DNA from: Klebsormidium nitens
Taxonomy: Eukaryota; Plantae; Klebsormidiophyceae
Direction: 5' to 3'
Assembly (NCBI GenBank): GCA_000708835.1
Contig: DF237471.1
Location: forward strand, 1-48,222
Length of the DNA stretch: 48,222 nucleotides
Under the pieces are notes generated by a model that was not told the DNA's origin, did not search any database, and saw only the letters and a program-made list of their open reading frames with translations. Made by a program: the position numbers and the translations under genes. The first letter of the stretch is position 1, and every line of letters begins with the position of its first letter. Shown one piece after another: positions 1,128 through 47,898 of the stretch.

Positions 1128-1208
1128 GGTGGCTTTGACGTAATAAAGGCTTCTGAGAGGGGGTCCTCTCTCAGAGATCTTGCTCACACACTAGTTTCTG
1201 ATGCCATC
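1128..1208 (+). ncRNA. K-turn module (TTT-GACG / CTGA-T class)
   Basis: GGTGGC-TTT-GACG ... CTGA-T-GCCATC; internal TCTGAGAG/CTCTCAGA hairpin; paralog at 4085. Confidence 0.6.
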
Positions 1209-1430
1209 CTGGTCCTTTCTCTGGCCCTGATTCGTCAATTTGAAGCTAGCTGGTTTTATCCTTCGAGGTTACGTACCCCCAGAAACCATCCTGCATATGT
1301 CGATGTGGCCTCTTCTTCTCCGTTTAAAACCTGCTAATTTTCTTTTGCTGAATTTGAAACATGTCCAGTCCATCCTTTATTGCTTTGCGTACTGAATCGG
1401 CGCTCAAACCAACGCGATGCTCCAAGATGT

Positions 1431-1510
1431 ATGGCCAAGACGATTTATGCTGCTACGTAGCGCGCATCTCGATGCTTGCAACGGTGAAGCGAAATTCTTC
1501 CTGGAGCCGT
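1431..1510 (+). ncRNA. K-turn module
   Basis: ATGGC-CAA-GACG ... TGGA-GCCGT; internal GCATC/GATGC hairpin. Confidence 0.55.
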
Positions 1511-1712
1511 ATTGCGGACCTCTGAATACTGGCTAAGCAAATCATTGAACGGGAGCGCACTTCTTCTAAGATTTTGAGATGCAAAAGCGCGCCATATATT
1601 GACTTTGACTGGCACACATTTGATCGATTTTTGCGCAACCCTTATCACAATACCTCGGGTTCTGGGGAGAAGTTTGCATGGTGGATCGAATTCGTGACCA
1701 AGTTGAACTGGA

Positions 1713-1780
1713 TTGGCAAGGAGAGGATTGACGTGGCGCCAGAAAGTGCGCTACTCCTCCCTTTTGTCACTTTGAGCCAA
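1713..1780 (+). ncRNA. K-turn module
   Basis: TTGGC-AAG-GAGA ... TTGA-GCCAA; internal GAGGA/TCCTC and GTGGCGC/GCGCTAC. Confidence 0.7.
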
Positions 1781-2394
1781 CGCACTACGTAACGATCGTA
1801 GGACAGGAAGGAAGACACGTTCTGTTCTGGATCCGGAAAGCAAATTCTCCGCGGTTTGTTGTAGTGCGAGGGCCCCTCAATCTGGTGATCTTCAAATCAG
1901 CAGCCATATTAGGTTAATTCGGACACTGGCCTTTCCAATCCTGACAGTAGAGCCAAGTGGCGGGAATTATACGCGGACCTTGTCTTGGCCGTGTCATGCT
2001 GCCAGCTCGGCTTCCGTGAAGGTTACGGCATCAGTCACATCCGAGCGACGTTCGAATTGACTTCTGGACTCAGACTCTGTTTGGCAGCCTAGCAGCCTCT
2101 CTTCAAAGTCCATATCGTTCCGTACAGCAGACCCGATGCTGTATGTGCCGATGTTAGGCTATTTCAAGCTTAGCGAATATTGAGGACGAATACTGGTTGC
2201 ACCAGGCTACATTGGATAATATTCTGAAACAGCTCGCAGTACCTTTTCCCAATCAGCACCTACTACGCTCAGGATCACGGTCCGCGTCGCCCAGAGCTTT
2301 TTCTTGCTTGCCCCTGCTTTCGATCCGCCTTCCAACACAACTTTCATTCCCGAGCATCTAAAAACCCGTCCGGCAGCTTCAGCTTGCTTTTCTC

Positions 2395-2510
2395 CCCCCG
2401 GTCTCGTCTTCGTCCCCTCCCTTCCGCGCGCGCGTGCGCGGGGGGTCACGCGGCGGGCTGATGCGTGAGGGCCCCCCGGCCGGCCGCGTCCGACGCCGGG
2501 CGCAGCATAA
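2395..2510. promoter_or_regulatory. GC-rich promoter-like island
   Basis: CG-dense; TCACGCGGC, GAGGGCCC and CGGCCGGCCGCGT shared with the island at 8575-8700. Confidence 0.4.
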
Positions 2511-3249
2511 ACTGAACCGCTCGGCTTCACGGTTCTTGGGCTAAATTCATGTGGGCAGAGTCTTCGGCCGGGACGAGGTTTTAAAAGTTGGTCAGAAGCG
2601 TTTCTCAGGCTTGCTCGAAGTGTGTTCGTTTATCAAGGACGTATGAAGCGTCGATGGCTCAGAGGAATTCGGAAGGGGTGTCGGGGTGGTTAGACTTGTC
2701 AGAAACCTGTTTATAGTGGGAGGTTCAAATGTTTCGCTTTCGAAGCCCGAGTCGTAAGTCTGCCCAGATTACCAATTTGCACACCACTTTCGGTCCATCG
2801 AGACCCCTTTGAGGTGCCGTCCGTTGGAACCCATCCTAGATTTGCATGACGGCGCTCGATCGATCTTAGCTCTGGAGATATTGTTCGCTGAAAAAACTCT
2901 GTGCCGTCTGTCGTCGCCTCCGCTGACGCTCCGCGTGCTCAACTCTGCTCTTGCCGGGCCTCTGTAGCTTCTTGTGGAAAGATTCTCGCAATGCCCCATA
3001 GGGCTTTCTTAATTCTCAACGGCAAGTCGTTGAGATCAGACTCGAAGGGCAGCAGCCATAACGCAATTACTGGTAAGTTGTTTCGTGTACCGTTGTTCTT
3101 GGTCTGTTCACTTTCCGGCTGGGTAGAAGTCTGCCGGAGGGCTGTGGAATTTTCTCGGTTTCAATCTCAGCATACCGCAATCGTGAAATCCGGAAGACCT
3201 TAGTGTTGAAGTCTTTGTAACGACTGCAAGTCTGTGTAGACTTTGAAGA

Positions 3250-3325
3250 ACGGCGGTGATGTAACTTTGAGAATGGGCGCTTCTCATAGCAGCTTCGCGC
3301 ACCCATTGATCAGTTCCTGATGCTG
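3250..3325 (+). ncRNA. K-turn module (near-canonical C box class)
   Basis: ACGGC-GGT-GATG ... CTGA-T-GCTG; AATGGG/CCCATT; paralogs at 5991 and 16969. Confidence 0.55.
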
Positions 3326-3521
3326 CCCACCACGATTTTAAAAGAAAGCCGCCTGACTCTGATTGTCTAGATGATCCGTGTAACCATCTATCCGAAGTTT
3401 TCTTTCGGAGTAGTTGTCTCTCGCCAAGCAGTGCTCGGATATGTACGAGACTCAAAAGTCCGAAAATAGGTTAAATAAAAATCAACCGATTGTGTTTTTG
3501 GCAGATCATTTGATACCGTGC

Positions 3522-8700: not shown

Positions 8701-9032
8701 TCTTCAGCACAAGAGTGTTTGCACCATGTTTGCTCGGGCTGAAATAGCGGACCTTTGACTTCTTGCAAAGCAACTTTATATAATGAAGGCGCAAAAACGT
8801 AGGGCTTGGATCTCGAGATGCGGAAGCGCGCGACGCAATTTCAAACATTATGGACTGTCACATGTTGCCCTTGCCGTATATTGGAATCCTTCTCTTGTAT
8901 GCATTCCAAGGTAACTTCTCCTCTCATTTCTGGGGCGAGAAAGAAATTTGGTAGCAGCACTAGTAAAAGTTTGGCTTTGATTTTTTGATCAAGGTATTAG
9001 CATCCTGGGACTTACTAGGAAGAATTTAATTG

Positions 9033-9112
9033 GTGGCAACTTGAAGGAGAGGATCGATGTGGCGCCACGAAGTGTACTCTGGCACTCCACCTTTACCGTT
9101 ACTTTGAGCCGC
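9033..9112 (+). ncRNA. Diverged paralog of module 1713
   Basis: GTGGC-AACTTG-AAGGAGAGGAT..GTGGCGCC ... TTGA-GCCGC. Confidence 0.4.
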
Positions 9113-9372
9113 GCGCAATTGAATTTTTAACCAGGAACATTGTGACTGATCGGCACCCTTATATGTGCGACTTTGAATCTCACCCTTGATCTTATAGTCT
9201 TAACAGAACGGTACGTGTTACATCATCTTGAGGTACATCGATGCGGGTTATAACATAGGTGGCGCTTGAAATATTTACGATCATCTGGAGCGCGTGCAAC
9301 CTTGCAAGGGACATCGGCAGCGTTCCTACTTTGGCCATTACACGCGGAGGGAATCCCTGAGAAAAACGCCAG

Positions 9373-9450
9373 ATGGCAGGGAGGGTAAGCATCGCCTTGG
9401 CTGTTTCTATACTGCCAGGAATGGGTGCGTCTGCCTTCAGTCCGAGCCAC
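9373..9450 (+). ncRNA. K-turn module
   Basis: TGGC-AGG-GAGG ... CCGA-GCCA; internal CTTGGC/GCCAGG; paralogs at 17256 and 18846. Confidence 0.65.
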
Positions 9451-9594
9451 TGCCTTGTCAAAGACGAGGGCCGATATTAGAGCCTCTGCCTTCCAAACAT
9501 GTGCGTTCAATCTAGATTTCAAAGGGTGCTGCGGTATGCGCCTCGTCAGACTTGCAAAATACGCAACCCGTTTTCCGCAAGCCTTCATTTAATG

Positions 9595-9673
9595 TGTGGC
9601 AAGGACTACCCAACACTGTTGCCACGTGTCGCCTGACGGTGGCACCAGGCGGTTCTTCAATGCTTGAGCCACA
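9595..9673 (+). ncRNA. K-turn module
   Basis: TGTGGC-AAG-GACT ... TTGA-GCCACA; internal GCCAC/GTGGC; paralogs at 21221 and 22119. Confidence 0.7.
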
Positions 9674-9879
9674 TACTTACTATGTCCCGGGCTGCAGCTC
9701 CCAGGAAAAACCATATGTATGAAACCGTGAACCTGGCGTTATTCTTTCCAAGCGCTTTTTAGTTTGGATCTCGTATCTCCACCTGCACTGATCCGTTTGA
9801 ACATTCGTCCGTCTCTTGTAGTCGTATTTTGACATCGAGTCTCGGGCGTTCTTCTTTTAATTGAGCTGTGCTTCCTCCG

Positions 9880-10330: not shown

Positions 10331-10574
10331 CTGTTGTTCGAGTCGATCTTTCAACGCCAGCCGGAAGCCTGCTGCACGTACCACTGCTTAGCTCTTGTGG
10401 TTGGTCTATGTGGCGAAGACGAACTCTCAAGTGGCGTAAAGAAAAAACGGATAGGCAAGCTGCCACTTCGAGCTCCTTTTCATCTCCACGGTTCTTGAGC
10501 CGCATTTTCTGCCTGTTGAGATTCATATCAATTAGCAGCGCAACCCCCTTCATGCACCTACTTCATGCTTTCTG

Positions 10575-10860: not shown

Positions 10861-11490
10861 TGAACCAATTCAGACCACCCTTAGTGGCCCGGCTTGCCTG
10901 AGCCACCCGGCGGGTTCAGATTCACGGAGTGTATCAAGTTGCTTATGGATTTGGAAATGATATTTGAATCACGTTTTGGCGTGCTTTATCCTTTCAAGTG
11001 GCGATCACCAAGTAAAGCTGGTGCCGTTTAATGCCAAACAGGGACACGTGTTTTTTAAACTCACAATCGTAGACTCCAATATGCGAACTGAACTTTCATT
11101 GACTTTCATCCAAAAAAGACGCATATAGTAGACCCAGGCTCGAGAACTAGGCGGCAGAAAGAACATGCTTTTCAGAGCGTGTGTTTGTGGTACATGTTCG
11201 CCTCCAGGGAGCTGTGTGAGCGACGACCGGGCCCTTAAAGCGCATTGAACCCAAGAGATGCAGATTGCCAGCTTCGTTCCCGCCTCTGTCGATAGCCATC
11301 GCACTTCGGCACTTGATAACTTGTGCCGCTTACCGTGCCCTGCGCCAATTTGTTTGGTCAGCTCAGGACTTGCTTCCCGAAGTGAATGCATCTCTCCGTA
11401 GCACTTGCTTACTGATCTGGATTTTAACACGACTCTTTTTCGGTCAGTTTGTAACTTTGGCTTATCTCATAAATCTGGAGGTATTTCGGT

Positions 11491-11563
11491 GTGGCTAGGA
11501 GGACTTTTGCAAGTAGTGGCTCATGCAGACTGTGCCACACTTCCCGTAACTTGAGCCTGAGCC
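11491..11563 (+). ncRNA. K-turn module with tandem D end
   Basis: GTGGC-TAG-GAGG ... TTGAGCC-TGAGCC; internal GTGGC/GCCAC; paralog at 20635. Confidence 0.5.
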
Positions 11564-11697
11564 TTCATCTGCTGTTGATACACAAGGAGCGCCTCCGCTC
11601 ACGACTGACATTATCAGATTGAAAGAACGGATCTGAAGTTGTACCCATATCTGCCCAGGACAGCTTGTGCTGGCAATGACGCCTTGGTGATGACGTC

Positions 11698-15306: not shown

Positions 15307-15386
15307 ACAGCCAGGATGAGCCGACACCACAGCTTCCAAATCAAAGTGACCTTCAAAGATGTTCACGGATGATGTCCCGGAGCTGT
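15307..15386 (+). ncRNA. K-turn module with distinct stem
   Basis: ACAGC-CAG-GATGA ... CGGA-GCTGT; fully compensated 5-bp stem. Confidence 0.55.
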
Positions 15387-15517
15387 GAGCTAGCTTGAAA
15401 CCGGATGGCAAGCAATTAACTTTGTTTAGTCAAAAAGTCTAAGAGTGGTAGCAACCTGAACTTAGCGCTCATTTTCCTGGCCGGAGCGTCGCTGTCTGTC
15501 CGGAGCTTGTCTGCAAT

Positions 15518-15588: not shown

Positions 15589-15659
15589 TCACCTTAGTCC
15601 TTATCCCAAACGCTCGAGCCATTGCCATCCGCCCTGTCAATCTGTTCCGCAGGGTTTGT

Positions 15660-19532: not shown

Positions 19533-19544
19533 TTTCATTTGCAG

Positions 19545-35300: not shown

Positions 35301-36429
35301 AACACGTGACGTTTTCCATGATCCTGCCAGTAACCGTTAAGCTCCGGGATTCTTTAACTGCGTATTCCGTTGGTAGGTCACAGGTTGCGTTTGATAGCAT
35401 CCGCTGGTCAAGCGTCAAGAGCTGAATTTCGAAACATTCAGAATTGAGAAAGCCTTACAGGCTTGAGCTTCCGTGCTGATGTTCGTCATCTTTGCTCAAA
35501 ACGGTCCTTCGATAAAACAAAACATTTGCTGCCAAACTCGTTCTGAAACTAAGACAGCTTGTCGGCTTAGTCGCGGTCAAGAAGACTCGTGTTCGACATG
35601 GTCTTTCCACAGGGCCAATTCAGCTTGTCCATGAGGTTCAGACCCGGCCGAACCGCGTCAATTCCGATTGACTCCGTTTCCTAAGCAAGGGTAAAAGCCC
35701 CGCTAATGCGCTCGAGCAGATTTAAAAACGTTCTCCTCGTCAGTGCATAGACATACCGGTCCGTTCCCGGTTGTTTATCCCGCTGTGTCGTTGCTATTCT
35801 CTGTCGGGCAATTGGTCAATCGGGTCCGAGTCATCAGGTTGATGAGTGTTTTACAGCTTGACAGGCGGGCCGCAGAACTTCGCGATGGTCGAAATCGCAG
35901 CACTACCGTCCGATTTCAACATAAGGACTCCAGTCTGCAAAGTTTAGACAGGGGGTTTCGGGGTTGCAAACTTTGGCAGGACCGGTTCCGATACTGGGGT
36001 TCAAAGAAACCTTGCCTAACCCGACACAAACGAAAGATCGAGAGCGTTCATTTTTTGACGTCAAAATCTGAACGGCAGCGCTGCGATTCCGGGTCGTCCC
36101 CCAGCCATTTCGTGGTTCTGCGGTCCGCCTGTTGACAGCTGGACAGAGGCATGCCGGCGGTTTGAATCGGAGAGCGCAGCGCTCGTCTTGCTTGATACTT
36201 TGATACTGCTGAAAAACTTGACTTGTCAGACTATCAAGCAGGGGACTCTTAGCAGTATACCACAGCTAAGGACATGCTCCTATAGTCGGGTGGATAGTCA
36301 GGTGGATAGTTAACGCTAATAGGCCCAGCAACGATTCCGGGGTAAAACAAGATGTTGTTAGTACTTGAGTAGCGAGCGTCAAATCTTAGCTGGAAAAACG
36401 GGTTGCGTGCAAAAAGGTATGAGAATTCT

Positions 36430-36502
36430 GTGGCAGGGACGATGTCAAGCTGGGATTGGTGCTACGTGTCGTGCCACCCACCGTCTCTTGACTCGGAGCC
36501 GT
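36430..36502 (+). ncRNA. K-turn module
   Basis: GTGGC-AGG-GACG ... CGGA-GCCGT; internal GTCAAG/CTTGAC, TGGG/CCCA. Confidence 0.68.
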
Positions 36503-37213
36503 AGACCCTGACTCTAAGCCAGCGGCCTCTTCCGTCCATTGCTGAATTAGTAGGCTTGAAAATTACCAAGCAGTATTGCACCGGTAGGCCCGTCTGCGCC
36601 CGTTGGTTATTCGCTGATCCGTCCTTAGTTGCTAAAATTGCTCTCCGTTGGTTTGTGCATCCTTCCGTCCATTCAACCCTGGTCGTCCGCTCGGGTACAG
36701 TTGAAAATTCTGGATGGTGGCCGCCGGGCTTAACGATCCTTTGACAATCCACCTGATCGGTCATTCTCAGAGCCTACCTCCACCATCCTCTTATCATCGG
36801 AGTCCAATAGAGTTCTTTTGTTGGGCACCAAGGGCTGTCTTCAAAAACAGAATTGTTGGGCGTCGCTCGAGGTGCCGTCACGGTGCTAAGGACATCCGGC
36901 AACTCTTTTAGGGATGCCTTGCTTTCAGAAGGACTAGTCGCTGCCAAAGTGTCAATCTGCAAGGCAGCTTGTGAAGCGGTTTGTCTGAGTGCTGTCGGGT
37001 TGTCTCAAGTGTTGGTCACTTGGTCCTAAATCTTTTGAGTCCAGTTTGAATTTGTGACAATCTTGCTCAGATGCAATCGTCAAACGTATCCCCCTGCTTG
37101 ACTGCTGACATTACTGAAGACGGCATCAAAGAGCTTTACTTCCGAGTTCTTCCATGCAACTCCGTTTGAAATCGAACCGTCTCCACCGCCCGGAACGGGA
37201 GTTCAATACGGCC

Positions 37214-37286
37214 TCGGCAAGGATGTTCGTGCAACGATAGTGCTTTAGTTGCATCATGCATATCGTCTCTTTGAACCTCGAGCCAA
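37214..37286 (+). ncRNA. K-turn module
   Basis: GGC-AAG-GATG ... TCGA-GCC; internal GTTC/GAAC, TGCAAC/GTTGCA. Confidence 0.6.
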
Positions 37287-37458
37287 CCGTCCTCGAAGCG
37301 ATAAAAGTTTGTTCGAAAATCCGGTGAAAGTACATGTGAATCCTCGAAGGCCCCACCGCACCGTTCATTTTTTGATCAGGTTCTCTAGGTGAAAACGAAC
37401 TTTAGAACTTGCTTTCGTCCACTTCCTGGATCAGGCCGCTTGGCATCGACATGGTTGG

Positions 37459-37526
37459 CCTTGCGAGTCGCTCGTTTTTTTGTTAGGCAGCACTGCTACG
37501 CAGTTCCCCTTGCGAGTCGCTCGTTT
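37459..37526. repeat. 19-bp direct repeat x2
   Basis: CCTTGCGAGTCGCTCGTTT at 37459 and 37508. Confidence 0.85.
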
Positions 37527-37666
37527 CGCAAGTGTGACCTTCTTCAATCTGGTCCTGCGCCTGTACACTCCCTTTTACTTGCGGCTATCAAAGCTCTTCC
37601 AGTTCTCGAGGTCGTGTTTTTGCCCAAAATGCTAGATTCCCCACGCGTGCAAACCGTCATTATACA

Positions 37667-37738
37667 GCGGCTATGCGGCACAAAGTTTTGGTGCGCCTGC
37701 CAGAAGCTTCCACGTTGCTACCTTTACGATCTGAGCCG
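37667..37738 (+). ncRNA. Module, TAT-GCGG class
   Basis: CGGC-TAT-GCGG ... CTGA-GCCG. Confidence 0.5.
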
Positions 37739-38035
37739 GAACTCCTCGCCCACATTGCGTTTTGTGTCCAACAAGCTTAGCAAAAGGAACACTGTTTCCC
37801 GCCCACAATAAGCATTCCGCTTGCATTTTTTAGAAGCGCTGCGGACGCACCTGATCGAAATGAATACTGCGGCGCCACCATCTTTTTTTATCTGTTCTTA
37901 TGCGTTGCCGGGACGCTGCGTCTGACTTCTGCTGCGCGGCAAGGTTAATTGCCTATTTCATCGCTGCTTCCCTCATCAGCAGCTATTGGACTACACAGAA
38001 CAACAAGGCCTGATTCTGACTTCTATATTCAAATC

Positions 38036-38107
38036 CTGGCAGTGACGACTGCTCCTCTTGTGGGCCATGCGAGTGTCTCACCATGCTAATGGAGGCTTCG
38101 AAGCCAC
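38036..38107 (+). ncRNA. K-turn module
   Basis: TGGC-AGT-GACG ... TCGA-A-GCCA; internal CTCC/GGAG. Confidence 0.5.
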
Positions 38108-38625
38108 CTTAGCCTTTTCCATGTTGTCACTCTGAACCACTTGGCCCCTGAGGCTGGCATGACGCGCTCATCAGCACTTAAAGTCGACACTACTTCAAAG
38201 GCGCAGTCGCTTGCGCCAGCTTTGTAGGCAACTTTAAACCCCGAATCAATCCCGTCACGAGCAAGTATGACTTGGCCGGTGCTTTGTTCAAGAAGACACA
38301 GTTGTCCGTCCTGTCCCCTGCCCTTTCTTCGTACACCGTGCCACACAAATCTGACCCTTCTTTTGCAGCGTGCGATTCCGCCCATTCTTTCCTGTTGCTT
38401 CTTTGTTGTTCTAAACGTCTACTAGAACCTCTTTGTGATGCTTTTCAGCTTCGTATCAAATACCAGGACATAAAGTTTTTTTTTGGTGCTAGCAGGAGAG
38501 TTCCAAGTCACAGTGTTTGCAAGGGGACTTGATAATCTGGGGACTGAAGGGTTAGCAAGTGTATTATCTCTGCAGCAACGTCCGTTCACTTGAGGGTCTT
38601 GGTACGTACTCGGTAGTGCTCAGTA

Positions 38626-38697
38626 GGTGGCAGGGACGCCCGTAAAGCCTGGCCTGAAATCAGCCATTAGCGGGTGAATAAGTCGCCCTGAGCCACC
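38626..38697 (+). ncRNA. K-turn module
   Basis: GGTGGC-AGG-GACG ... CTGA-GCCACC; internal CCCGT/GCGGG, GGC/GCC. Confidence 0.72.
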
Positions 38698-39019
38698 CTC
38701 TTTGGCGCAAGAATGGCACCACGTCATGAAGGAAGCCCAAATCATTGCGCGGACTGGTATGTTTCAAGGCATTCTCTGTCTTGACGACCCCGAATCATAG
38801 CATGCAAATCTGTCTCGCTTCGGCCACAAGCCGGTCGTATGCTTTCCTTTCAAGAACGGAAAAATGTGTGCCGATCTTATGGCACCACTTATTTAAAAGT
38901 CGAACGGTGCCACATGGCACGCCACTTTCTTTCGGCGACGGCGACTGTCGGCCATTTGTCCCGTTCGTCGGCTGCAATTTGAATCTAATCCATCCGGCAC
39001 GATCCTCTAAAAGCTGGTT

Positions 39020-39370
39020 AGCTTGCTTTCCGTTCCGTTCGTTGATTGTTCTGTCCGTAACCTGTTGCTGGGCACCGTCGGTTTCCGTTTCCTGTCTTTC
39101 CACTTCTCCGTTCCGCCCTGCGCGCTCCGTCTCCCTAAGAGGGATGACTCGTCTAGCCTGTGAAAGTCCTGTTCCGGAGCCCCTGCTTCTGCCCGTTCTC
39201 GCTTTGGACGTCCCAACCGGGGCCGCCCTTCCATTCCGCCGTTCCGCCCGTCCAATCCGCCGTTCCGTCCAACCATTTCGCCGGTCGACTCGGCGACCTT
39301 CAATCTCTCTTCCCCCTGTGCGTCCTTTTATCGTCCATATTTTGAATCAACGTTGCCCTCCCTTCACCAA
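39020..39370 (+). repeat. CCGT-rich pyrimidine tract
   Basis: TCCGCCGTTCCG repeats, A-poor. Confidence 0.55.
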
Positions 39371-39664
39371 ACGATAAGGTTTGGGTCTCCTCCCCTCCTC
39401 GTATATTATCCACCGCATGATTTTCGAAACGGGCACTGCCGGACCTAGTCTAGCTCATTTCGCGCTGATGTGGCAGCAAGCTAGGGACTGGTTGCTGCAG
39501 AGCATTTAATTTGAGCCGGTGCAAACGAACCCCTTCTTACTTTCACGCAATTAGTTGATTTCTTGCAAGACATCAGGTCACCGAAAGCTAAGTCCCTCAA
39601 GGATAACACGTTGCATCCTGGAGTTTATAGTATCTAAAGCGACTCATTTTTTGCGCTTCCATCG

Positions 39665-39745
39665 GTGGCGAGGATGGACACCGCTTGATGAGAAACGTAG
39701 CTTCAAGCTCGAAGGTGTGACTGCAATGCAGCAAACCTGAGCCAT
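39665..39745 (+). ncRNA. K-turn module
   Basis: GTGGC-GAG-GATG ... CTGA-GCCAT; internal CACC/GGTG, GCTTGA/TCAAGC. Confidence 0.72.
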
Positions 39746-39936
39746 ACGGTGTCTCCCATTTTCCCAATCAGATCACATGCTTGGTAAACGCGGTTTGATG
39801 CCTGGCACTTAGTGTGCTTGATCGTGTCCTCATTGTACTTCGAGGCGCTAGCTCCCGGCGCCCGTTCTAAACCGGCTTGCGCCTTGAGTTGCTCGACGAA
39901 CAGTTTGCCTTCTAGATCTAGGAGAGCAGTTGTCTT

Positions 39937-40015
39937 GTGGCAATGACGTAAGGATTTTTGACGTGGCCGTGACATGCATAGCCAATTCTCATCACGTAAT
40001 CCACACGCAGAGCCT
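39937..40015 (+). ncRNA. K-turn module
   Basis: GGC-AAT-GACG ... CAGA-GCC; internal GGATT/AATCC, ACGTG/CACGT. Confidence 0.55.
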
Positions 40016-40730
40016 CCCCTAAATTTCGTTGTCCAGGCTTTCAGCTTATTGATGGAGTTATGGCGCCACCTTGCCAAGTGCTTAGCGCTCAGGGCGGACT
40101 ATAGTCTTATAGTTGCTAGCTCGCGGTTCGATTTTTACGATCCAAGCCTAGCCTGCGAACTTAGTCTTTCTTGAAAGATTCAAACTTTCATCTTGTTGGA
40201 TCTGCACCCCTCGAAAGACAACAGCATGCATCTGAAGAGTCTCTTGGCACAACGTCGTGCTTCGCCTGGTGAATCCAACGTTAAGCCGCTATTTGATTGC
40301 TAGCAAAAGTACTACGTAGCGACCAAGACCCTCGGGTTCAGCAGTCTTGTTCAGCAGATCTTGTTTACTGGGTATCTCTGAGCAACTCGTCCTATGTTTT
40401 TTTGACATGTGGTGTCGTTTCTCTGCCAGGTTACTTCAACGAATTGGAAGCGACCGACAATGCTTCTCAGCTTCGAATTCTGATAGGCCGTGTCAGATGA
40501 GTCCTTGTCCGATGAACTCAAAGCCGTTTTCGTTTGGCTATGGCGTTAACGAACTTTACTCTGGGCCCTTTTTGAGCTTGTTCATCAACGATTTGATCTT
40601 TTATGCGCAGCTATAGATTGTCTTGTACGTTAACTTATCGTTGTTGCCCGGAGCGACCAGCAGGAGTTTCTAGATAGCCCCACTTCCAACCCTTGGACTT
40701 GTCGTCCCCGTGCCACGGGCATTGAGCATA

Positions 40731-40805
40731 TTGGCAGTGACGTCGGTCCTGGCTTGGCGCTTTATGAGGCGCTAAGTTTTTTTCGCTACGTCAAGTCTGA
40801 GCCAT
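40731..40805 (+). ncRNA. K-turn module
   Basis: TGGC-AGT-GACG ... CTGA-GCCA; internal CTTGGCGC/GCGCTAAG. Confidence 0.7.
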
Positions 40806-40979
40806 GAATCCTAGTTGTGTCTCGATGGGCTGATTGGCACGCAGATGAAACTTGGGATGAGTCCCTTTAAAGGGCCGTCACGGTCGGATAGAGTGGGCGC
40901 TTTCCGAGCAGACAAATCCAGCCAGTTCCCGTCTTGAGCAAGTTTTAAATGCGTCTGCTGACAAAAGAAATCGAGTCAG

Positions 40980-41057
40980 GCGGCAGAGATGGTTTTTTGT
41001 ATGGCGCTCCGGATTCAAGGCGGCGCCAGCTTTCTTTTTCGAGTAATTATGAGCCGC
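40980..41057 (+). ncRNA. K-turn module
   Basis: GCGGC-AGA-GATG ... ATGA-GCCGC; internal TGGCGC/GCGCCA. Confidence 0.62.
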
Positions 41058-41299
41058 GCGTCCTCAGTGTAAGGCGCTTTCAATTCCTGCCACGCTAGAG
41101 CAGTTGCAGATACGCTAAATCTTCCTCACCTGAGCCAAGTCGACTTGCTAAAAGTTCTGCCCTTAAAGTTGGCACGTCAAAAAGTAGATGCCTCTCAGAT
41201 TCTGCATACGCCTCGATTCCTGAGACAAAGCCTCGATTAAAGAGTGCGTGACCCGCACTTTGTGGCAGCCTTTCGAATATTTCGTATGCTGCCCGGTTG

Positions 41300-41630
41300 C
41301 TCATCCGTCGGGCCGAACTGGATGGCCTTGTCTTTTCTCCTCCGACTGCGCTTTAAGTTCGTCCCTGTCCGCCCGTCCTTTGTCCGGCTCCAGGCCACTG
41401 CTTCGTAACTGGTTTGTCCGATCTCGTTTCCACGTCGCACTTTATAGTAGCTCCACCGCAACTCCCCTTCCTTCTTTCTCAGCGCCTACTTGGTTTTTCC
41501 TCCGAGAAATGTTGTGTTGCGTCCGTCCATGTGCATTGTGGTCCGCAGTGCCTTTGTCTTTTCCAATCTGTTCCCTGTATAACTTATCATCCGTTGGGCG
41601 CGCTCTCGTCCGTCCCTTCCCGCAAACTGT
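41300..41630 (+). repeat. CCGT-rich pyrimidine tract (paralog at 43150-43500)
   Basis: C/T-rich, CCGTCC words. Confidence 0.5.
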
Positions 41631-41807
41631 TCTTTAGATTCCCATCTCTTAACAGATTTCTGATCTGAAGTCTTTAGGACATATATTACGGTCCGGTTTA
41701 TCTTGCCGTCCTTGATAAGATTGTCAATCGCCCCCGTCCCTATGAAGGTCAGCGCCAGAATCTGAGCAAAGTTGCTCGGTCAAAACCTGACTCTTTTCTT
41801 GATTGAC

Positions 41808-41892
41808 GTGGCAAGGAAGGACCTCGCCCGCTGGCCATCTTGCGACAGCGCCAGCGGGAGTTCTGCGCGTGCGATTTCGAGCTCTGAGCCAT
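41808..41892 (+). ncRNA. K-turn module
   Basis: GTGGC-AAG-GAAG ... CTGA-GCCAT; internal CCCGCTGGC/GCCAGCGGG, TCGC/GCGA. Confidence 0.72.
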
Positions 41893-42364
41893 CTTCGCCT
41901 GATCACCAATTTTTATGAGAATCAGCCCCAGAGAGGATTTGAGTGGGCAAGCACCTAAAAACATCTTGACCTGCTTACTGGCGGAGATTGAAACTGGGTG
42001 GGCCGCTTCTATCCAAGACGAATGGTGATGTCCAGATAAGGGAAACCTTCTTTTGCAAGCACCTTCTTTTTGCATCTGCACGGCGGTCGAATGCCAAGCC
42101 CTGCGCCAAACGTACCCTATTGAGATCAAGCTTGAATCCGGTCTTTTCATACGCATTCTCCCAGTGCCAAGTAGGTTAAATCATTCTAGAATCAACAAGG
42201 GTCCTCATTGGCCCGGGTGTGTGCTTGAATTTCAAGTCTTCTGAGCGTGATTGCCCGTGTTTCTAGTTTTAGCCAGCCGTATCGCTGCTTAGAGGGATAC
42301 CCGCGCTTTAAGTAGATACGCAGTTTTGTTAACAAGTTAATTTTGAAGATGTCACACAAGGGCC

Positions 42365-42444
42365 GGGCAAGGAAGACGACACCATTGGTGAAGCATCGAT
42401 GCTTCAACCTTGGACTTCCTGCTGCTTGTGCACAATCTGAGCCT
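42365..42444 (+). ncRNA. K-turn module (palindromic-core family)
   Basis: GGGC-AAG-GAAG ... CTGA-GCCT; internal GAAGCAT/ATGCTTC. Confidence 0.68.
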
Positions 42445-42729
42445 CCTACGGGCCTCGTCTTACCACTGTACTTCACACCAGGCTTCAAATGATTGGATTG
42501 CATTCTGCTACGTTGAACGAAAGTTGTCGCAGTATTTGATCAAACATGGTGAAACTGGGTTCCAGAGATTTCTTCTGAACTGTGAAGCGCTACCAATTAG
42601 CCTGCCTGTAGACAAAGAAGGATCTTTGAACTGACGCGCTTGGTTGTCGTTGAAGCGACCAGAGGAAACCTTTAGCCCCACTGCCAAACCACACACACTT
42701 GTCATTCCCGTGCCACGGCAAAGAAGCAA

Positions 42730-42807
42730 TGTGGCATTGACGTGGGTCCTAGCTTGTCGCTTTATGAGGCGCTAAGTTTTTACTCAATCCCTCAAGTCTG
42801 AGCCATA
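42730..42807 (+). ncRNA. K-turn module
   Basis: TGTGGC-ATT-GACG ... CTGA-GCCATA; paralog of 40731. Confidence 0.7.
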
Positions 42808-43685
42808 AAACCTAGTGGTGTTCCGGCTGCTTGATGGGCTTTTTAAAATGCATGGGAGCTTTTCTGGAGCCTTCGGGTGAGTGGGCATGCACTTGCCATC
42901 AGTTTCCTCTTTGCTTTGTGACTTACGTCCTCATGATTACGCGTCACGGCTTCCGCTATTTGAGAAGTCAGGCGGGCAAAGGTACGTCAATTAGACGACA
43001 GATTGAAAACCTGAGCCAAGTTGAATATCTAACAGTTCTGCCCTTAAGGTGGGCAGGAGGGACAGTAGATGCTTGTCAGATTCTGCATACGCTCAGCTAG
43101 AAAGTGCGTGGCCTACAATTTCAAAGAAAATGCCATTGGAACGTTTCGTATGTTGCCCGGTCGCCCATCCGTCGGGCCGATTTAGATGGCCTCGTCTTTG
43201 CTTCTCCGATCGCGCTTTTAACTTTGTTCCTGCCCGCCCGTCCTGCGTCCGGCTTCAGTCCACTTCTTTGTATCTGTTCCGTCCGCTCTCGTTTTTACGT
43301 CGCAGTTTTCAGCTCCACTGCAGTCTCCATCTCTTCGTTTCTAGATCAGCGCCTACTTGCGTTTTCCTTTGAAGATTCTTCTGTGCGTCCGTCCACCTGC
43401 GTTCTGGTCCGCAGGGCCTATGTCTTTTCCGATTCGTTCCGTAAACAAATCCGTGTTCTGGCCGGCGCGATTTCGTTTGCCCGTTCTCGCAAACTGTTCC
43501 TTAAGCCACAGTCTCTCAACAGCCTTCCATTCTAAAGGTTGTCGGTCTTGAGGACATGAGTACAGTCCGTATTATTACGTCCTCCTTTATAAGATTGCCC
43601 CCGTCCCATGAAGGTCAGCGCCAGAATCTGGGTGCATGCCATTGATTGGCCAAAATCCGACTTTGTCTTGATTGTCTTGATTGAC

Positions 43686-43767
43686 GTGGGAAGGAAGGAC
43701 ATCGCCCTTTGGCCATGTTATGACAGCGCCAGGGAGAATCGCATGGCGATTTCAAGCTCTGAGCCAT
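43686..43767 (+). ncRNA. K-turn module with a closing-pair mutation
   Basis: GTGGG-AAG-GAAG ... CTGA-GCCAT; paralog of 41808. Confidence 0.5.
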
Positions 43768-44227
43768 CTCGGCGGACCACTAGTTCGGGAAACTCGCCCC
43801 ATCCAGTGAAATTGATTGGGCAAGCACAGATTCACCCGTCACCCTGCTTACTAGCAGATGTTGAAGTCCACCTGGGGCCTTGTAGCTCCATCAAGATAAC
43901 GTTCAAATTACCATCTTATTCTTGAAAAGGCCTTATTGTTCATATGCAGGGCCGTCGGCTGCCCTGCCCTGCGTTCAAACGTACCCCGTTGGGATCAAGC
44001 TTGAAGTCTGTCGTCTCGATTGAATTCTGCAGATGAATAGTGGGCTGTAATTTGTTTTTGAAGGGCTTGATGTGTGCTCGATCTACTTCTTAAGATACGA
44101 AAGCGACTGCCGTTGTTCAAGTTCTCTCAATAAACTAGACTGTTTGTTAAAAGGGTGGTTCTGCACTGCGAGCTGTGGGTAAGCGGGTACGTTTGTTTGC
44201 AGAAAAGTTAAGAAATGGTCTCAAAAG

Positions 44228-44304
44228 GGGCAAGGATGACTGACACCATTGGTGAAGCATGCACCAATGCTTCGACCATGTCCTTGCTGTCTCTTTCCGA
44301 GCCT
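44228..44304 (+). ncRNA. K-turn module (palindromic-core family)
   Basis: GGGC-AAG-GATGA-CTGA ... CCGA-GCCT; internal CATTGGTG/CACCAATG. Confidence 0.68.
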
Positions 44305-44462
44305 ACCTCCCTAGTCCCAGATCGAGATCATCTGCACTAGACGGCTCTGATTGTTTAATTGAAGGTCTCTTGAAAACCCGTGGGCGGTAGGTGATGAACA
44401 TGACGAAGTTGGGCTCTACTTGCGACTTCTATTAGAGAAAGCTAGCGCTACGAAGCATGCTT

Positions 44463-44535
44463 GTGGCAAAGAAGAACTTTTGATTTATGCACTCCGTTGC
44501 GTCATGGAGGAAGTGTAAGCGAGGACTTCGAGCCG
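44463..44535 (+). ncRNA. K-turn module
   Basis: TGGC-AAA-GAAG ... TCGA-GCCG; internal CTCC/GGAG; decayed paralogs near 12903 and 42610. Confidence 0.55.
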
Positions 44536-45340
44536 GCCCGTTCTCCTGCAAGCCCATCAGTTTGAATGATTGTGTCTCTCAAATCGTGTGCATCAACTCA
44601 TTCCAAAAGGGCCGATTGCCACTCTAAAGGCTTGCATGACCTGATCATGTCGAGTATCAAAGCGTTGGCTTGTGTGGACCCAACGGAAAAGGCTGCTTCC
44701 GGGTGTGCTCTGCCTTCTGTTTGATGGTTCAAACCAAAACTGCCAGGGTCTTCCCGCCTCCAAATAAATGCTAGTGATGCTTTTGACGATTAGCCGTCTG
44801 AAAATAGGTTTTCTGATCAGGCCGTCTGGATGTATGATGGGCTCTAAGTTCGAGTGGCCGCTATAAAAGATTTCTAACCTGTCACATCAAAGCACAGTAT
44901 GATCAGGCCGCGGTGGGTCAAGCTAACTGTAATATCCAAGGCAGACGGCAAAGATTGCTACTAGCATGGCGCGCGCTCCGGCTGGCGCCATCGATCTCAA
45001 AGAACTTGAGCCGTTGCTCGTGTCCAAAGTGCAGAATCCCGTCACTTACGAGTTCTGGGATTTTCCTCTAAAATTCAGGCTTGTCTTGTCGACGGTATTA
45101 GCTCAAACGAGCTTCGTGTCAGTCGACCAAATGCAGAGTAACGCATGCCTGCTCCAGACGGTCACGGTTTACATCCTTGGATGTTCCCTTCGTTGTATCT
45201 CCAAGTCACTCAAAGAGATCCATTTACCAGCATGTTACAAGTTGTGCCGAATAAACGTAAAGGAGCTTTCAGAATAATATTCCGTTTCGATTTTCGCCGG
45301 ATACTTTTGGAAGGAATTCTGGGGAGATTGTGGTTAAGCC

Positions 45341-45434
45341 TTGGCAAGGATGAGTCTGAGTGGTGCCTCTGTCACCAAATGCCTTCATATCTCACGGAGC
45401 TGCCAACTATTTGTAGCTATAAGTGCCGGAGCCT
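45341..45434 (+). ncRNA. K-turn module
   Basis: GGC-AAG-GATGA-GT-CTGA ... CGGA-GCC; internal GGTG/CACC, AGCT/AGCT. Confidence 0.55.
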
Positions 45435-45939
45435 GCCACCCAACTTAGGATGGAATCTAACGGACTGTCCAGGCCCGGGGTTCTCGTTTTTCGCCGAGCT
45501 CCGCCTTTCTTCCGTCAGCCGTTTCTCCGTTCAACTGCTCGCATAATAGTACGACCGTACCTGCCGATCTTCCTTCTCTTGTCAAAGCGAAGCTCGACAG
45601 CCCGTCACAGTTTCCAATTCTCGATCGCCGTTCGGAGGGCCTCCAGATCAGTTTGCGGGAAGACGACAGAAACTTTGCAGGCAGATCTGTTCCGTGTGTG
45701 TGCAAGGATGGTTTTCTAGGGGCTCCAGAAGCTGCCTCAAGGTCGTCACGAGGCGCTGACTCCCTTCAAACCTTGACCACCGGCCCGCAAGCTGCAAAAG
45801 GCCATGATTCTCAGGAGGTCCCATTTGCATCTAGTACGGCATTTTGGACTCTGGCTCCGTCACCGGAGCGCGCGTGGGCCACCTCGATCTTTCATTCTCT
45901 GCTGTCTTTGCTGCCGTAATTTGACTATCTTTGAGTAGC

Positions 45940-46130
45940 AGGGTCGACCCATTCGCCCGTACGCATGCCAATGCGTCCGCCCACGATTCTTCCGTCCGTC
46001 CGTCCATTCCCTTGCTTTCCGTTCCGGTTGGTCCATCCGTCCGCTCCGCTCCCGGTCCGTCCCATGATGTCTCTGTATGCTCCCGGTTTTGTCCGTCAGA
46101 GCCCTTCCTCCGTTCCTGCGCTCTGCCCAA
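45940..46130 (+). repeat. CCGT-rich pyrimidine tract
   Basis: TCCGTCCGTCCGTCC etc. Confidence 0.6.
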
Positions 46131-46835
46131 TTTCGTCACTGCCAGTGCATCATGCAGGTTCGGAGTTCTGTGCAAAACGACGTTCCCCTTATCGTTTCCT
46201 GCCAGACGGCCGCTATACTTTGCTTCTGTCTAAGAACAACCCGGCTCGATCAATCTGCAAGTGTCCATGCTTCCCTGTAGTATCCGCTTAAATTAACTTC
46301 TGTACGTGGCCCGTTCGGAAAGGTGGGCGCTGCCACGTATCATGATTATGTGTCCTGTGATAGACGCGAGGCTGAGCACGTATCATTCTCACGATATTCT
46401 GACGATGGTTTATAAAGCAGAGTGGGCAACTAGTAGCCTGGCGCTCCTGGCTCTGTCGTTCGTTTTAGCCGTTCTTGGTGCAAATAAAGTGACTTTCGCC
46501 TTTCCCATTGTTAAATTTTGGGCGCTCAGCGGCACCTGCAGATTATATGCTTCTCAACTTGCACCCCCTTGAAAGGTGTGGGATCGCAGCTGGACAGCTC
46601 CTCGTGCATCTGGCTTCTTTCTAAGGTCTTCTTACTCAAATTGAGCGTTCTAAGAGATGATGCTTACTTCTGACATTCGTGTGGATGTCCAATAGAGTAT
46701 GGTCGTCGTGTGAGCGTCCTTTCTAGTTGCAGGGTACCAACCGAAAGATTTTCTCATCAATTTGTGACATCCACTTACAGCCCAGTGGCGCCAATTGAGC
46801 GCTTTGATTCCGCACGCCTCCTAAGCTCGAGTGAC

Positions 46836-46916
46836 GTGGCAAGGAGGACGTTATGTATGGTGCTGTTTCAAACGCGCCAGTGACTCTGCTAGGTTTGAGT
46901 AAGCGCCCCGAGCTAC
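46836..46916 (+). ncRNA. K-turn module
   Basis: GTGGC-AAG-GAGG ... CCGA-GCTAC (G-U keeps the stem); internal GGTGC/GCGCC. Confidence 0.68.
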
Positions 46917-47082
46917 ACTCTCGAGCACTCTTCTCAGTGAACAGTTGGCAGAGAGCGTTACGCTCGCTTATGCTTCGCATTTCTCCAGAAACAAAAGTTT
47001 GAAACGGCGAATCCTTGTACTTTGATCATGCCAGTTCAGCTGGATAGGTGCCTCTAAGCAAGGGGTTGCATGAAGTTGGGAC

Positions 47083-47160
47083 TGTGGCAAAGGCGATGTC
47101 GCGTCCGAACACGTAAACGCGCCCTAAAGCAAGAATGATAGAATCAACGGGGGAGCCACA
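47083..47160 (+). ncRNA. Module (2b mutated)
   Basis: TGTGGC-AAA-GGCG ... GGGA-GCCACA; internal CGCGT/ACGCG. Confidence 0.5.
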
Positions 47161-47819
47161 ACACCCGGCGTTGCCAATCTTCTTCGAAAATTTCGTCCAA
47201 TTCCTTAACAACCACCTGATCGGTCTTTTTTTCTGATCCGTTTGTCTCCCTCCTTCCGTCCTTTCGGCGGTTGATGAGTCCGTTTCTTCCTGGCAGACGC
47301 TTGAGAAAGCCGTCCATGTTTTCCTTACCCCTGTTCTCGCCTTCCGGCTGATCGCTTTTTTCAAGTTTTTGGGCTGTACTCTTTGTGTATGCTGATGTAT
47401 CCTCTTCTGAATATCTGGTTCGTCCACTGGCCTTCCGGCCGGTATACGTTTCCGCTTCTCTAGTAATTTCCATCTCAATCCTCGTAGGCTCTGGCACTTT
47501 AGAAGCACTGCTCCTTTGTTTTGCGCACTCGTTTATCCACGATCATTCCGTTGCTACTCCGCCGCTTTTTGAATTGCTTGTTTCCTCCGAGTTCGCACCT
47601 TAATCCGCTCTATTGTAAGTCCGGCGCCCTTCTGTAGATTCACGCTCGCAACTTCCTTCCGTCCGTTTACTCAGTTTACTCCCTTTCGTCAGTAGATCTG
47701 AACCATCCAAATGGTCCGCTCTTTCTTCTCTTCAAATATCTCCTTCAGTTTATCTTCTTCAAAGATCAGCTAAAAGCTTGATTCACATCTCCGAGTAATG
47801 CCTAGGTTTTAATGCTGAC

Positions 47820-47898
47820 GTGGCAAGGAAGGAGCTCGCAGAAAAGTTCCTGGAACGGGGTTAGCAGGACTGGTGAGTTGATACGAGCCCCGAGCCAC
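47820..47898 (+). ncRNA. K-turn module
   Basis: GTGGC-AAG-GAAG ... CCGA-GCCAC; internal GAGCTCG/CGAGCCC. Confidence 0.68.

Follow-up and report, generated by a model that had tools for sequence, protein, structure and literature searches.

The window analysed here, a 48-kb stretch of 48,222 nucleotides from the green alga Klebsormidium nitens, carries ~45 to 60 hairpin units of ~75 nt each on a single strand (+). On balance, we somewhat favour the reading that this is a protein-free locus, at least partly transcribed, in which ~45 putative kink-turn (K-turn) RNP modules, snoRNA-like and orphan, lie on a long non-coding RNA. These modules are not rRNA methylation guides of the ordinary kind. 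We found no credible ORF in the window, none longer than 210 aa, no Pfam matches and no tRNA genes, and the module family has no match in Rfam, as the initial annotation anticipated in assigning it to no known family.

Number, strand and position of the modules

The initial annotation had counted ~60 modules, all on the + strand. The bias in strand is already evident from short words, with GGCAAGGA occurring 20 times on the + strand and 0 times on the - strand, and TGAGCC 43 and 9 times. A stem-independent pair, GGC[AG]NNGA ... GAGCC with a gap of 45-105 nt, was found 39 times on + and once on -; when a stem of at least 5 bp was demanded, 27 pairs were counted on + against 4 on - and 1-5 in shuffles, so the density is equal neither on the opposite strand nor in shuffled sequence. 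We further scanned both strands with a covariance model of the modules (R1, filters off), whose matches on the + strand numbered 41 at E<=0.5, rising to 45 when E<1 was allowed and to 64 with E<=10, while the best match on the - strand had E=2.1; those at E<1 are thus exclusively on +. A control scan of 125 kb of unrelated eukaryotic DNA returned 3 matches, 0 of them above 17 bits. Given these counts and controls, the + array is real and 40-45 modules are solid, ~60 being an upper estimate. The described layout of stem, 3-nt bulge and GA was seen at all 12 module coordinates inspected, among them the six originally cited. The modules have a median length of 75 nt and a median spacing of 622 nt.

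The array (all modules on +; R1 scores in brackets) opens with a weak module at 1429..1512 (GGC-CAA-GA ... GGAGCC, 7-bp stem; E=0.99) and one with a UUGGC/GCCAA stem at 1711..1782 (32.8 bits), of which 9031..9114 is a paralog (E=0.77; alignment A4). Modules follow at 9371..9452 (14.5 bits), 9594..9674 (36 bits), 10408..10505 (37.1 bits), 11489..11567 (27.3 bits), 15516..15590 (35.8 bits), 17808..17880 (26.7 bits), 18846..18931 (22 bits), 19455..19534 (16 bits), 20633..20706 (22.1 bits), 21220..21297 (27.4 bits), 21519..21594 (26.2 bits), 21726..21811 (8-bp stem; 27.1 bits), 22117..22190 (34.1 bits), 24762..24831 (33.9 bits), 28022..28083 (25.5 bits), 29798..29875 (47.1 bits), 30431..30504 (43.9 bits) and 31027..31097 (37.5 bits), the last two having paralogs at 25376..25449 (41.8 bits; self-BLAST) and 26024..26094 (30.6 bits). 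Interspersed are a truncated module at 13412..13458 (18.1 bits), a paralog of 44943 by self-BLAST; a variant at 15304..15389, missed by R1, with core AGC/GCU replacing GGC/GCC; a weak paralog of 9371 and 18846 at 17254..17341 (E=1.1; alignment A4); one without a clear 3' end at 18582..18635 (15.5 bits); and one with a divergent 3' end at 20003..20105 (17.1 bits).

A module-poor interruption spans 31100..36400, with a weaker T>A skew, a G-rich + strand at 34-36 kb and no credible ORF; it is possibly a boundary between two transcription units. Beyond it lie modules at 36428..36504 (28.7 bits), 37212..37288 (24.9 bits), 38625..38698 (29.7 bits), 39663..39747 (27 bits), 39935..40018 (18.5 bits), 40978..41059 (45.8 bits), 42729..42808 (23.3 bits), 43684..43769 (23.6 bits), 44225..44307 (14 bits), 44461..44538 (19.5 bits), 44943..45016 (31.8 bits), 45339..45408 (19.8 bits), 46834..46918 (GGC/GCU core; 39.6 bits) and 47818..47900 (34.5 bits). 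Paralogs of 42729, 43684 and 44225 are found at 40729..40807 (21.2 bits; alignment A3), 41806..41894 (37.3 bits) and 42362..42447 (15.4 bits), respectively.

Architecture and evolution of the modules

From 5' to 3', a module consists of a 5-bp stem, a 3-nt bulge, GA, a variable arm, a hairpin, a second arm, YUGA and the closing stem. The terminal C helix reads NUGGC/GCCAN and is closed by C-G at the turn in 37/40 modules. The bulge has the form A-A/G-G/A/U, i.e. A-R-N, and its L3 position is mainly G (G 25, A 8, U 5, C 2), where box C and U4 have U. The GA after the bulge is invariant, as is GA on both strands of the motif; the 4b.4n pair (G-C) forms in 30/40 modules, and the 3' strand carries the box D-like YUGA, with CUGA the commonest tetramer (13/40). 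At the sequence level, the K-turn geometry originally proposed is borne out, and the module ends carry a simple K-turn signature; placing the 3' GA in the bulge instead gives a poorer fit. Past 4b.4n, pairing in the non-canonical helix is inconsistent, many modules leaving 5-16 nt unpaired ahead of the 3' GA, and the K-turn assignment is therefore made from sequence alone. A varying bulge beside a kept GA, together with the C-G closure and 4b.4n pairing of most modules, is the pattern that would be expected of a K-turn, unlike that of a repeat held by descent alone.

The claim that the terminal stems covary stands for two pairs. Pair 4 is formed in 30/39 modules (permutation mean 23.1, p=0.0014) and pair 5 in 25/39 (permutation mean 18.9, p=0.016), while pairs 6 and 7 form no more often than chance predicts and the core pairs GGC/GCC, being invariant, are uninformative for or against. 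The model alignment had a covariation score of 0.220, shuffles one of 0.117, and 0/500 shuffles reached the observed value. The stem covariation is real but confined to pairs 4 and 5, and the sequences used are partly paralogs. G.U and A.C combinations number 12 and 9 in the stem, with no clear G.U excess, so stem chemistry leaves the folding strand unfixed. An enrichment of 9 to 1 is seen for a word in the flanks, TGACGTGG, whose core is ACGT.

It is very improbable that the modules represent a DNA signal or a non-K-turn RNA structure, such as protein-binding sites in one shared orientation or a basal-junction signal that an RNA-processing nuclease would recognise. The strict co-orientation, the flanking ACGT-core word and the G.U and A.C counts would suit such a signal; however, the stem covaries, the GA/GA arrangement is structurally sensible solely as + strand RNA, and self-BLAST revealed no inverted copies anywhere in the window.

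Inside the K-turn signature, the first arm is free in sequence and fixed in length (mode 12 nt), the inner hairpin starts with UGG and finishes with CCA, and the second arm, directly upstream of YUGA, measures 17-26 nt. An internal UGG lies 8-19 nt past the GA in 24/37 modules (shuffles: mean 7.7, maximum 15), in 11 of them at exactly 12 nt, and stems anchored at it average 5.33 bp versus 4.52 +/- 0.22 in shuffles. Modules fold more stably than their shuffles (mean z -1.12), which is not the case for spacers (-0.03).

Self-BLAST indicated that the array grew exclusively by old direct segmental duplications, now at 66-80% identity. In paralog alignments, module interiors (72-79% identity) and spacers (76%) change at similar rates; the 90% identity of module ends is an inflated figure, because those ends served to pick the modules. 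These observations bear on the possibility that the motif pair is a neutral relic, passed down from an ancestral duplicated unit or renewed through gene conversion, with no RNA function and incidental transcription. Growth by duplication, the equal conservation of spacers and modules in the block 40.6-42.5 versus 42.6-44.4 kb, and decayed copies at 12265 and 13412 are in line with a relic. We nevertheless consider it unlikely, as ~40 units keep the pair although neither their interiors nor their flanks are alignable any more, GA stays constant while the bulge varies, stem pairs 4 and 5 show compensatory changes, and the internal UGG holds a fixed distance across subfamilies.

We also looked for targets of the arms and found none. 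In none of the arms anchored at the box D-like motif did complementarity to conserved rRNA reach 10 nt, the conserved words being those shared by 4 or more of 14 eukaryotic rDNA loci, which stood in for the rRNA of K. nitens itself; sense, antisense and shuffled controls were alike, with no excess. The suggestion that the modules are guide RNAs is unsupported. Box C/D snoRNA membership is likewise unsupported: box C UGAUGA is present in 0/40 modules, C'/D' boxes are absent from them, and Rfam snoRNA models gave no match even at E<=10 in a 4.4-kb stretch. Ordinary box C/D snoRNAs with a divergent box C, serving rRNA 2'-O-methylation, would account for the CUGA peak and for a terminal stem, size and clustering like those of plant snoRNA clusters, but against these findings they are scarcely credible.

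Transcription and a possible fate of the modules

The locus is made into long RNA, at least in part. RNA runs X5 and X8 each yielded one unspliced contig of 12,192 nt across 36-48 kb (36060..48222), which matches the window exactly and has no joints; the word depth was 34.5 (X5) and 40.2 (X8). The contigs are unstranded, their 5' limit at 36060 is inferred from contig coordinates, and colinearity with the window was checked at 40700-46600 and ~47816-47869. None of the listed RNA runs contains the 21-31 kb part. X5 and X8 themselves have almost no sampled words from 24000-31500 and 21200-22200, a result that speaks against carried-over DNA as the origin of their contigs. On the + strand, T exceeds A throughout the array. 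Unspliced RNA over 36-48 kb fits both a precursor and the single lncRNA with dozens of K-turns envisaged by the initial annotation, and the accumulation of a 12-kb unspliced RNA argues against efficient module excision.

In the favoured reading, a long non-coding transcript would be produced from the locus and each predicted K-turn bound by an L7Ae-family protein (Snu13 or a paralog). Each module would then form a snoRNA-like RNP with exonuclease protection reaching the 5-bp stem, and either be kept on the long RNA or be trimmed to a ~75-nt RNA. The arm of 12-nt mode and the 17-26-nt arm would be the sole candidate antisense elements.

Alternatively, the RNA might be a scaffold from which modules are never released, its dozens of putative K-turn sites concentrating or sequestering, for example, an L7Ae-family protein. 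The continuous, joint-free 12.2-kb contig at a depth of 35-40 in two RNA libraries speaks for this, as do arms without targets found and module interiors that change near the spacer rate, so that the ends alone seem to matter. However, a fixed 12-nt arm of free sequence is hard to square with a pure binding site, the sharp stop of conservation at the 5-bp stem suits trimming equally, and neither library contains the 21-31 kb portion; we regard a pure scaffold as somewhat unlikely.

Comparison with known systems

The modules share with simple K-turns, among them ribosomal Kt-7 and the U4 snRNA 5' stem-loop, a C helix, a 3-nt bulge, G.A/A.G pairs and an NC helix, and in a much-used Kt-7 construct the C helix is likewise GGC/GCC, with C-G next to the turn. 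Kt-7 and U4 are, however, single sites in large RNAs or snRNAs, whereas here the motif closes ~45 separate hairpins, whose NC helix is often broken on the 3' side. Box C/D snoRNAs resemble the modules in size (60-100 nt), in a short terminal stem beside a K-turn that combines a 5' box with a GA-ending 3' box, in a 3' box peaking at CUGA with a variable arm directly upstream, and in a 4b G pairing with a 4n C, as box C G6 does with box D C1. The archaeal C-to-D' spacing also resembles the 12-nt spacing after the 5' box. In contrast to box C/D snoRNAs, the module 5' box is A-A-G-G-A-N-G rather than R-U-G-A-U-G-A, so that neither a protruding U nor a U.U pair is present, a plain UGG...CCA hairpin replaces the C'/D' boxes, rRNA complementarity and an Rfam match are missing, and the units are spaced hundreds of bases apart in a 48-kb array.

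TIGR arrays, to which the modules had been likened, share short conserved anchors and variable spacers of fixed length, and their UG and CCA anchors base-pair (PMC12045711), where in the modules UGG...CCA frames the inner hairpin. The likeness fails on architecture. TIGR arrays occur in prokaryotes and their viruses as compact units of 8-12-nt repeats and 9-nt spacers beside a Nop-domain Tas gene (PMC12045711); the modules lie hundreds of bases apart with no neighbouring protein gene, bear a K-turn signature, and use their terminal pairing to close a unit rather than to separate units.

Plant polycistronic snoRNA clusters place several small RNAs on one strand of one precursor with no individual promoters (PMC5122169), an arrangement that the putative module RNAs would share. 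In such a cluster, 2-5 canonical snoRNAs with rRNA targets lie ~100-300 nt from one another (PMC5122169), whereas ~45 non-canonical modules extend here across 47 kb. The mammalian SNORD115/SNORD116 arrays and the sno-lncRNAs derived from them consist of near-identical units with canonical C and D boxes in introns of a spliced host gene (PMC3413130, PMC12429941), whereas the modules are highly diverged (66-80% identity or unalignable) and without box C, and the RNA contig is unspliced. What these arrays share with the locus is dozens of co-oriented orphan K-turn units, putative in our case, which belong to a long non-coding transcription unit and multiplied through tandem duplication within one lineage (PMC3413130, PMC12429941).

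Module ends and terminal stems

The modules, plus-strand RNA hairpin units of about 75 nt closed by a putative kink-turn (K-turn; GGC-RNN-GA ... GAGCC), showed the proposed layout at every module coordinate read, including the six cited in the initial annotation, and their excess over the minus strand and shuffled sequence was confirmed. Within the window, GGCAAGGA occurs 20 times on the plus strand and never on the minus strand, and TGAGCC occurs 43 and 9 times, respectively. A sequence-only set, defined as GGC[AG]NNGA followed by GAGCC 45-105 nt later with no further pairing required, contained 39 motif pairs on the plus strand and 1 on the minus strand; with a stem of at least 5 bp, the counts were 27 and 4, compared with 1-5 in shuffles. 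A covariance model (R1) built from 27 modules and run without filters returned 41 plus-strand matches at E≤0.5; the number rose to 45 at E<1 and to 64 at E≤10. The earlier count of about 60 modules is therefore the upper end, and 40-45 are solid. The top minus-strand match of R1 had E=2.1, and 125 kb of unrelated eukaryotic DNA yielded only 3 weak matches, none above 17 bits. The modules have a median length of 75 nt, and their starts lie a median of 622 nt apart, with gaps at 1.8-9.0 kb and 31.1-36.4 kb.

Anchoring on the module ends gave the logo G-U-G-G-C/A-A-G/G-A/N-G at the 5′ end and A-N-Y-C-U/G-A/G-C-C-A-Y at the 3′ end, and no conservation was found outside these two logos on either side. 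In this register the bulge is always 3 nt long, and its bases vary while the adjoining GA is kept: L1 and L2 are each A in 32/40 modules, and L3 is G in 25, A in 8, U in 5 and C in 2. The pair at the turn (-1b.-1n) is C-G in 37/40, as in the Watson-Crick C helix of a simple K-turn, and GA on both strands agrees with tandem sheared G.A/A.G pairs; on the 5′ strand G is present in 37 and A in 33 of the 40, and the 3′ GA occurs in all modules, partly through selection of the set. Position 3b.3n is mostly a mismatch, which is common among K-turns, whereas 4b.4n is G-C or G.U in 27/40 and paired in 30/40. Positions 5 to 10 of the NC helix pair at chance level only. In K-turn-constrained folds, pairing between the 5′ arm (from the GA to the inner hairpin) and a portion of the 3′ arm (from the inner hairpin to YUGA) is frequent, and 5-16 nt ahead of the 3′ GA remain unpaired. 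Pairing the ends with the 3′ GA in the bulge instead gave a poorer fit than the K-turn register. The module ends thereby appear to carry the sequence signature of a simple K-turn, in agreement with the geometry originally proposed.

The terminal stem is exactly 5 bp long, within the 4-6 bp of box C/D RNAs. In the sequence-only set, stem pair 4 forms in 30/39 (permutation mean 23.1, p=0.0014) and pair 5 in 25/39 (permutation mean 18.9, p=0.016), while pairs 6 and 7 are at chance level. In the model-based alignment, changes on both sides of the stem were found in 13 cells, compared with 4.9 in shuffles, and the covariation score was 0.220, compared with 0.117; neither value was reached in any of 500 shuffles, and all slid stem registers scored lower. 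The covariation initially claimed for the terminal stems thus holds for pairs 4 and 5 and is real but thin, because the three core pairs are invariant and some of the covarying cases are paralogs. A signal acting at the DNA level, or one other than a K-turn, seems a very unlikely reading of the modules.

Several further features lie at or near the module ends. In two paralogous modules (40716-40731 and 42715-42731), an extra GGC-NNN-GA precedes the main one by 15 nt, and the 5′ K-turn strand is therefore tandemly duplicated there. In one module subfamily (25447-25500, 30502-30560 and 38696-38740), the 3′ flank past the stem is conserved too (CCUCUUUGAUGCAAA ... CCUGAA), and contains the words UGAUGC and CUGA at a distance of about 15 nt. 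The word TGACGTGG, which is G-box-like with an ACGT core, occurs 9 times on the plus strand and once on the minus strand, either directly preceding a module (TGAC-GUGGC) or where the inner hairpin begins, for example at 41802-41812, 46830-46840, 47814-47824 and 1727-1735.

Module interiors, spacers and array history

Inside the modules, UGG lies 8-19 nt past the GA in 24/37 cases (shuffled mean 7.7, maximum 15), a feature that the initial annotation had not listed, and in 11 modules the distance is exactly 12 nt. Stems anchored on the U of this UGG average 5.33 bp, compared with 4.52 ± 0.22 when the downstream part is shuffled, and the commonest interior words are GCCA, TGGC, GCGCC and TGGCG. 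Each module thus begins with the stem and K-turn, followed by an arm of free sequence, about 12 nt long, and a hairpin framed by UGG...CCA; a second arm of some 17-26 nt then leads to YUGA and the closing half of the stem. Relative to dinucleotide shuffles, modules gave the more stable folds, with a mean z of -1.12, and spacer pieces of equal length did not (-0.03).

Self-comparison of the window revealed 20 matches of 66-81% identity, all direct and none inverted, a pattern pointing to array growth by old tandem or segmental duplication. A transposon or MITE was rejected on the lack of inverted copies and A tails and on a 5-bp "TIR" that is too short. Copies of exon edges were likewise rejected, since the motifs bear no resemblance to GT or AG splice sites. 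Aligned paralogs are 83% identical in modules and 76% in spacers. For the K-turn ends, comparison of 13 paralogous module pairs gave 90-91% identity, a value that is partly circular because those ends served to recognise the modules, compared with 78% for the 5′ arm, 79% for the hairpin and 72% for the 3′ arm. A neutral relic, in which the modules would be left over from duplication, is in our judgement unlikely. In the block at 40.6-42.5 kb against 42.6-44.4 kb, a 600-nt spacer is conserved as well as the modules, and decayed module copies lie at 12265 and 13412. The stronger argument for constraint is that some 40 units have retained the K-turn ends, and the inner UGG at its position, even though neither their interiors nor their flanks are still alignable.

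The spacers carry a second motif, whose strand bias is stronger than that of the module motifs: CCGTCC occurs 59 times on the plus strand and 7 times on the minus strand, and TCCGTCCG 16 and 0 times. The motif lies in pyrimidine-rich tracts throughout the spacers and is in part a degenerate (TCCG)n, for example at 9877-10270, 14468-14530, 22434-22640, 27217-27680, 41373-41740 and 45992-46060. The core of this motif, CGUCC, complements GGACG within many of the 5′ K-turn boxes (AAGGACG). At 39223-39283, within a pyrimidine-rich spacer, a short tandem repeat of 2.9 copies of a 21-nt unit (CCGCCCATCCATTCCGCCGTT) overlaps the longest open reading frame (ORF) of the window, which has no Pfam match.

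Overall, the window of 48,222 bases is about 50% G+C, and each of its 2-kb bins has more T than A on the plus strand. Its longest ORF measures 210 aa, the ten longest had no Pfam match, and neither tRNA nor tmRNA was detected; the module-poor part at 31.5-36.4 kb contains no coding-looking ORF. At 31100-36400 the T>A skew is weaker, with a positive G-C skew at 34-36 kb and a G-rich tract at 33940-34350. Very G+C-rich, partly palindromic blocks (GGCCGG and CGCGCG runs) occupy 2400-2500 and 32160-32330, both in module-poor parts and with no BLAST similarity to each other; they could be CpG-island/promoter-like or inserted sequence. Paired TGACGTAA/TGACGTCA sites are present at 32350-32385.

Probable transcription of part of the array

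Read mapping covered 40700-46600 and drew on sequencing runs whose RNA label was guessed ("RNA?"). Two of these from different studies, X5 (2024) and X8 (2022), each gave one 12,192-nt contig that was identical to the window and without joints over this interval, with a word depth of 34.5 and 40.2, respectively; the contig is strand-less. Over the same interval, run X12 gave eight short low-depth pieces and run X10 none. The contig extends from about 36060, a 5′ limit inferred from contig coordinates, to just beyond the window end, and its colinearity to about 47.87 kb is indicated by a second matching piece and by a loose-end consensus that equals the sequence of the module at 47818. The inferred start coincides with another TGACGTCA. 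The near-identity of the contig to the window may mean that the RNA came from the assembled strain.

The runs X5 and X8 contained next to none of the words sampled from 24000-31500 and 21200-22200, and none of the RNA runs listed had these intervals. DNA runs contain the window in full. DNA carry-over is unlikely as the source of the RNA contigs, because the X5 and X8 contigs total about 44 Mb, which is transcriptome-sized (DNA runs, 104 Mb), and because words from 21-31 kb are nearly absent from the same runs. We read the 36-48 kb block as covered by a long unspliced RNA; in the available libraries, the 21-31 kb block is silent. The part at 31.1-36.4 kb, poor in modules and with a different skew, may be the boundary between the two blocks. 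The plant USE motif was not enriched, and neither a T-run terminator nor a conserved upstream or downstream flank was found at the modules. With no snRNA-type promoter element, T run or conserved flank, the modules are not separate genes.

Guide tests, interpretation and known systems

Membership of the modules among box C/D snoRNAs was not supported. UGAUGA, the core of box C (RUGAUGA), is present in the first 20 nt of 0/40 modules, whose 5′ box is AAGGANG or a variant, and the box D-like 3′ tetramers of the 40 modules are CUGA (13), UUGA (9), CCGA (7) and others (11), with the GA given by selection. Neither CUGA nor UGAUGA is enriched in module interiors, so C′/D′ boxes are absent, and a canonical scan (RUGAUGA ... 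CUGA with a stem) gave zero matches on either strand. Rfam returned nothing at gathering score or E≤1 for the whole window, nor at E≤10 for 40700-45100 (4.4 kb), and its sole alignment was a chance pyrimidine-rich one to NEAT1_2; the canonical box C/D snoRNA was rejected, and Rfam contains no family of this kind.

As an rRNA test set we used 14 long eukaryotic rDNA loci from metagenomes, fetched via the conserved 18S 3′ end; it represents rRNA of eukaryotes other than K. nitens. Against sense rRNA, the 3′ and 5′ arms had longest complements close to those in the controls (antisense, reversed and shuffled). For the 3′ arm the means were slightly above the controls, but matches of at least 11 nt were not enriched. 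When anchored at the box D-like motif, the arms of 0/40 modules matched 10-mers conserved in at least 4 of the 14 loci, and arm complementarity to the rest of the window showed no excess. As far as tested on these 14 loci, the modules are not rRNA guides, and that they are ordinary guides of this kind is scarcely credible.

On balance, we are inclined to regard the modules as K-turn elements that act at the RNA level, are carried on long non-coding transcripts and would nucleate L7Ae/Snu13-type RNPs. The abrupt end of conservation and the fixed-length free-sequence arm favour release as snoRNA-like particles of about 75 nt; the 12-kb RNA that accumulates, together with the near-neutral interiors, favours retention on a scaffold RNA. 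A bolder proposal, which we advance only tentatively and consider rather doubtful, is that the modules are new array-encoded eukaryotic guide RNAs, in which the K-turn anchor and UGG...CCA hairpin would hold a 12-nt free-sequence spacer and a longer arm in an L7Ae/Nop-type RNP with non-rRNA targets, the arrays turning over by duplication and being activated one block at a time. Because the 12-nt arm is fixed in length and free in sequence, this guide hypothesis can be tested directly.

If the modules are bound and used as RNA, they would constitute an undescribed large RNP family in a streptophyte alga near the land-plant origin, one using the snoRNA K-turn anchor without box C or rRNA targets in arrays tens of kilobases long. 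Such a family would bear on the diversification of C/D-type RNPs beyond ribosome modification, on the origin of orphan snoRNA-like arrays such as SNORD115/116, and on the role of rare long gene-free stretches in the otherwise gene-dense K. nitens genome. In literature covering snoRNA, small RNA and lncRNA in Klebsormidium and K-turn arrays in algae, we found no description of such modules.

Box C/D RNAs and the orphan SNORD115/116 arrays come closest among known systems, with TIGR arrays a more distant parallel, and the modules lack defining features of each. SNORD115/116-type arrays consist of tandem units that are nearly identical and lie one per intron in a spliced host transcript, whereas the self-matches here are only 66-81% identical and the RNA contigs run without joints over 40700-46600. 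The suggested likeness to TIGR arrays fails on gene content and on unit architecture. A TIGR array has an adjacent Nop-domain Tas gene, in contrast to the short, Pfam-negative ORFs of the window. TIGR arrays are compact, with repeats of 8-12 nt alternating with spacers of about 9 nt (PMC12045711), unlike modules of about 75 nt whose starts are hundreds of nucleotides apart. Under the tentative guide reading, the fixed 12-nt spacer would serve as a ruler, as in archaeal C/D sRNAs and TIGR RNAs.
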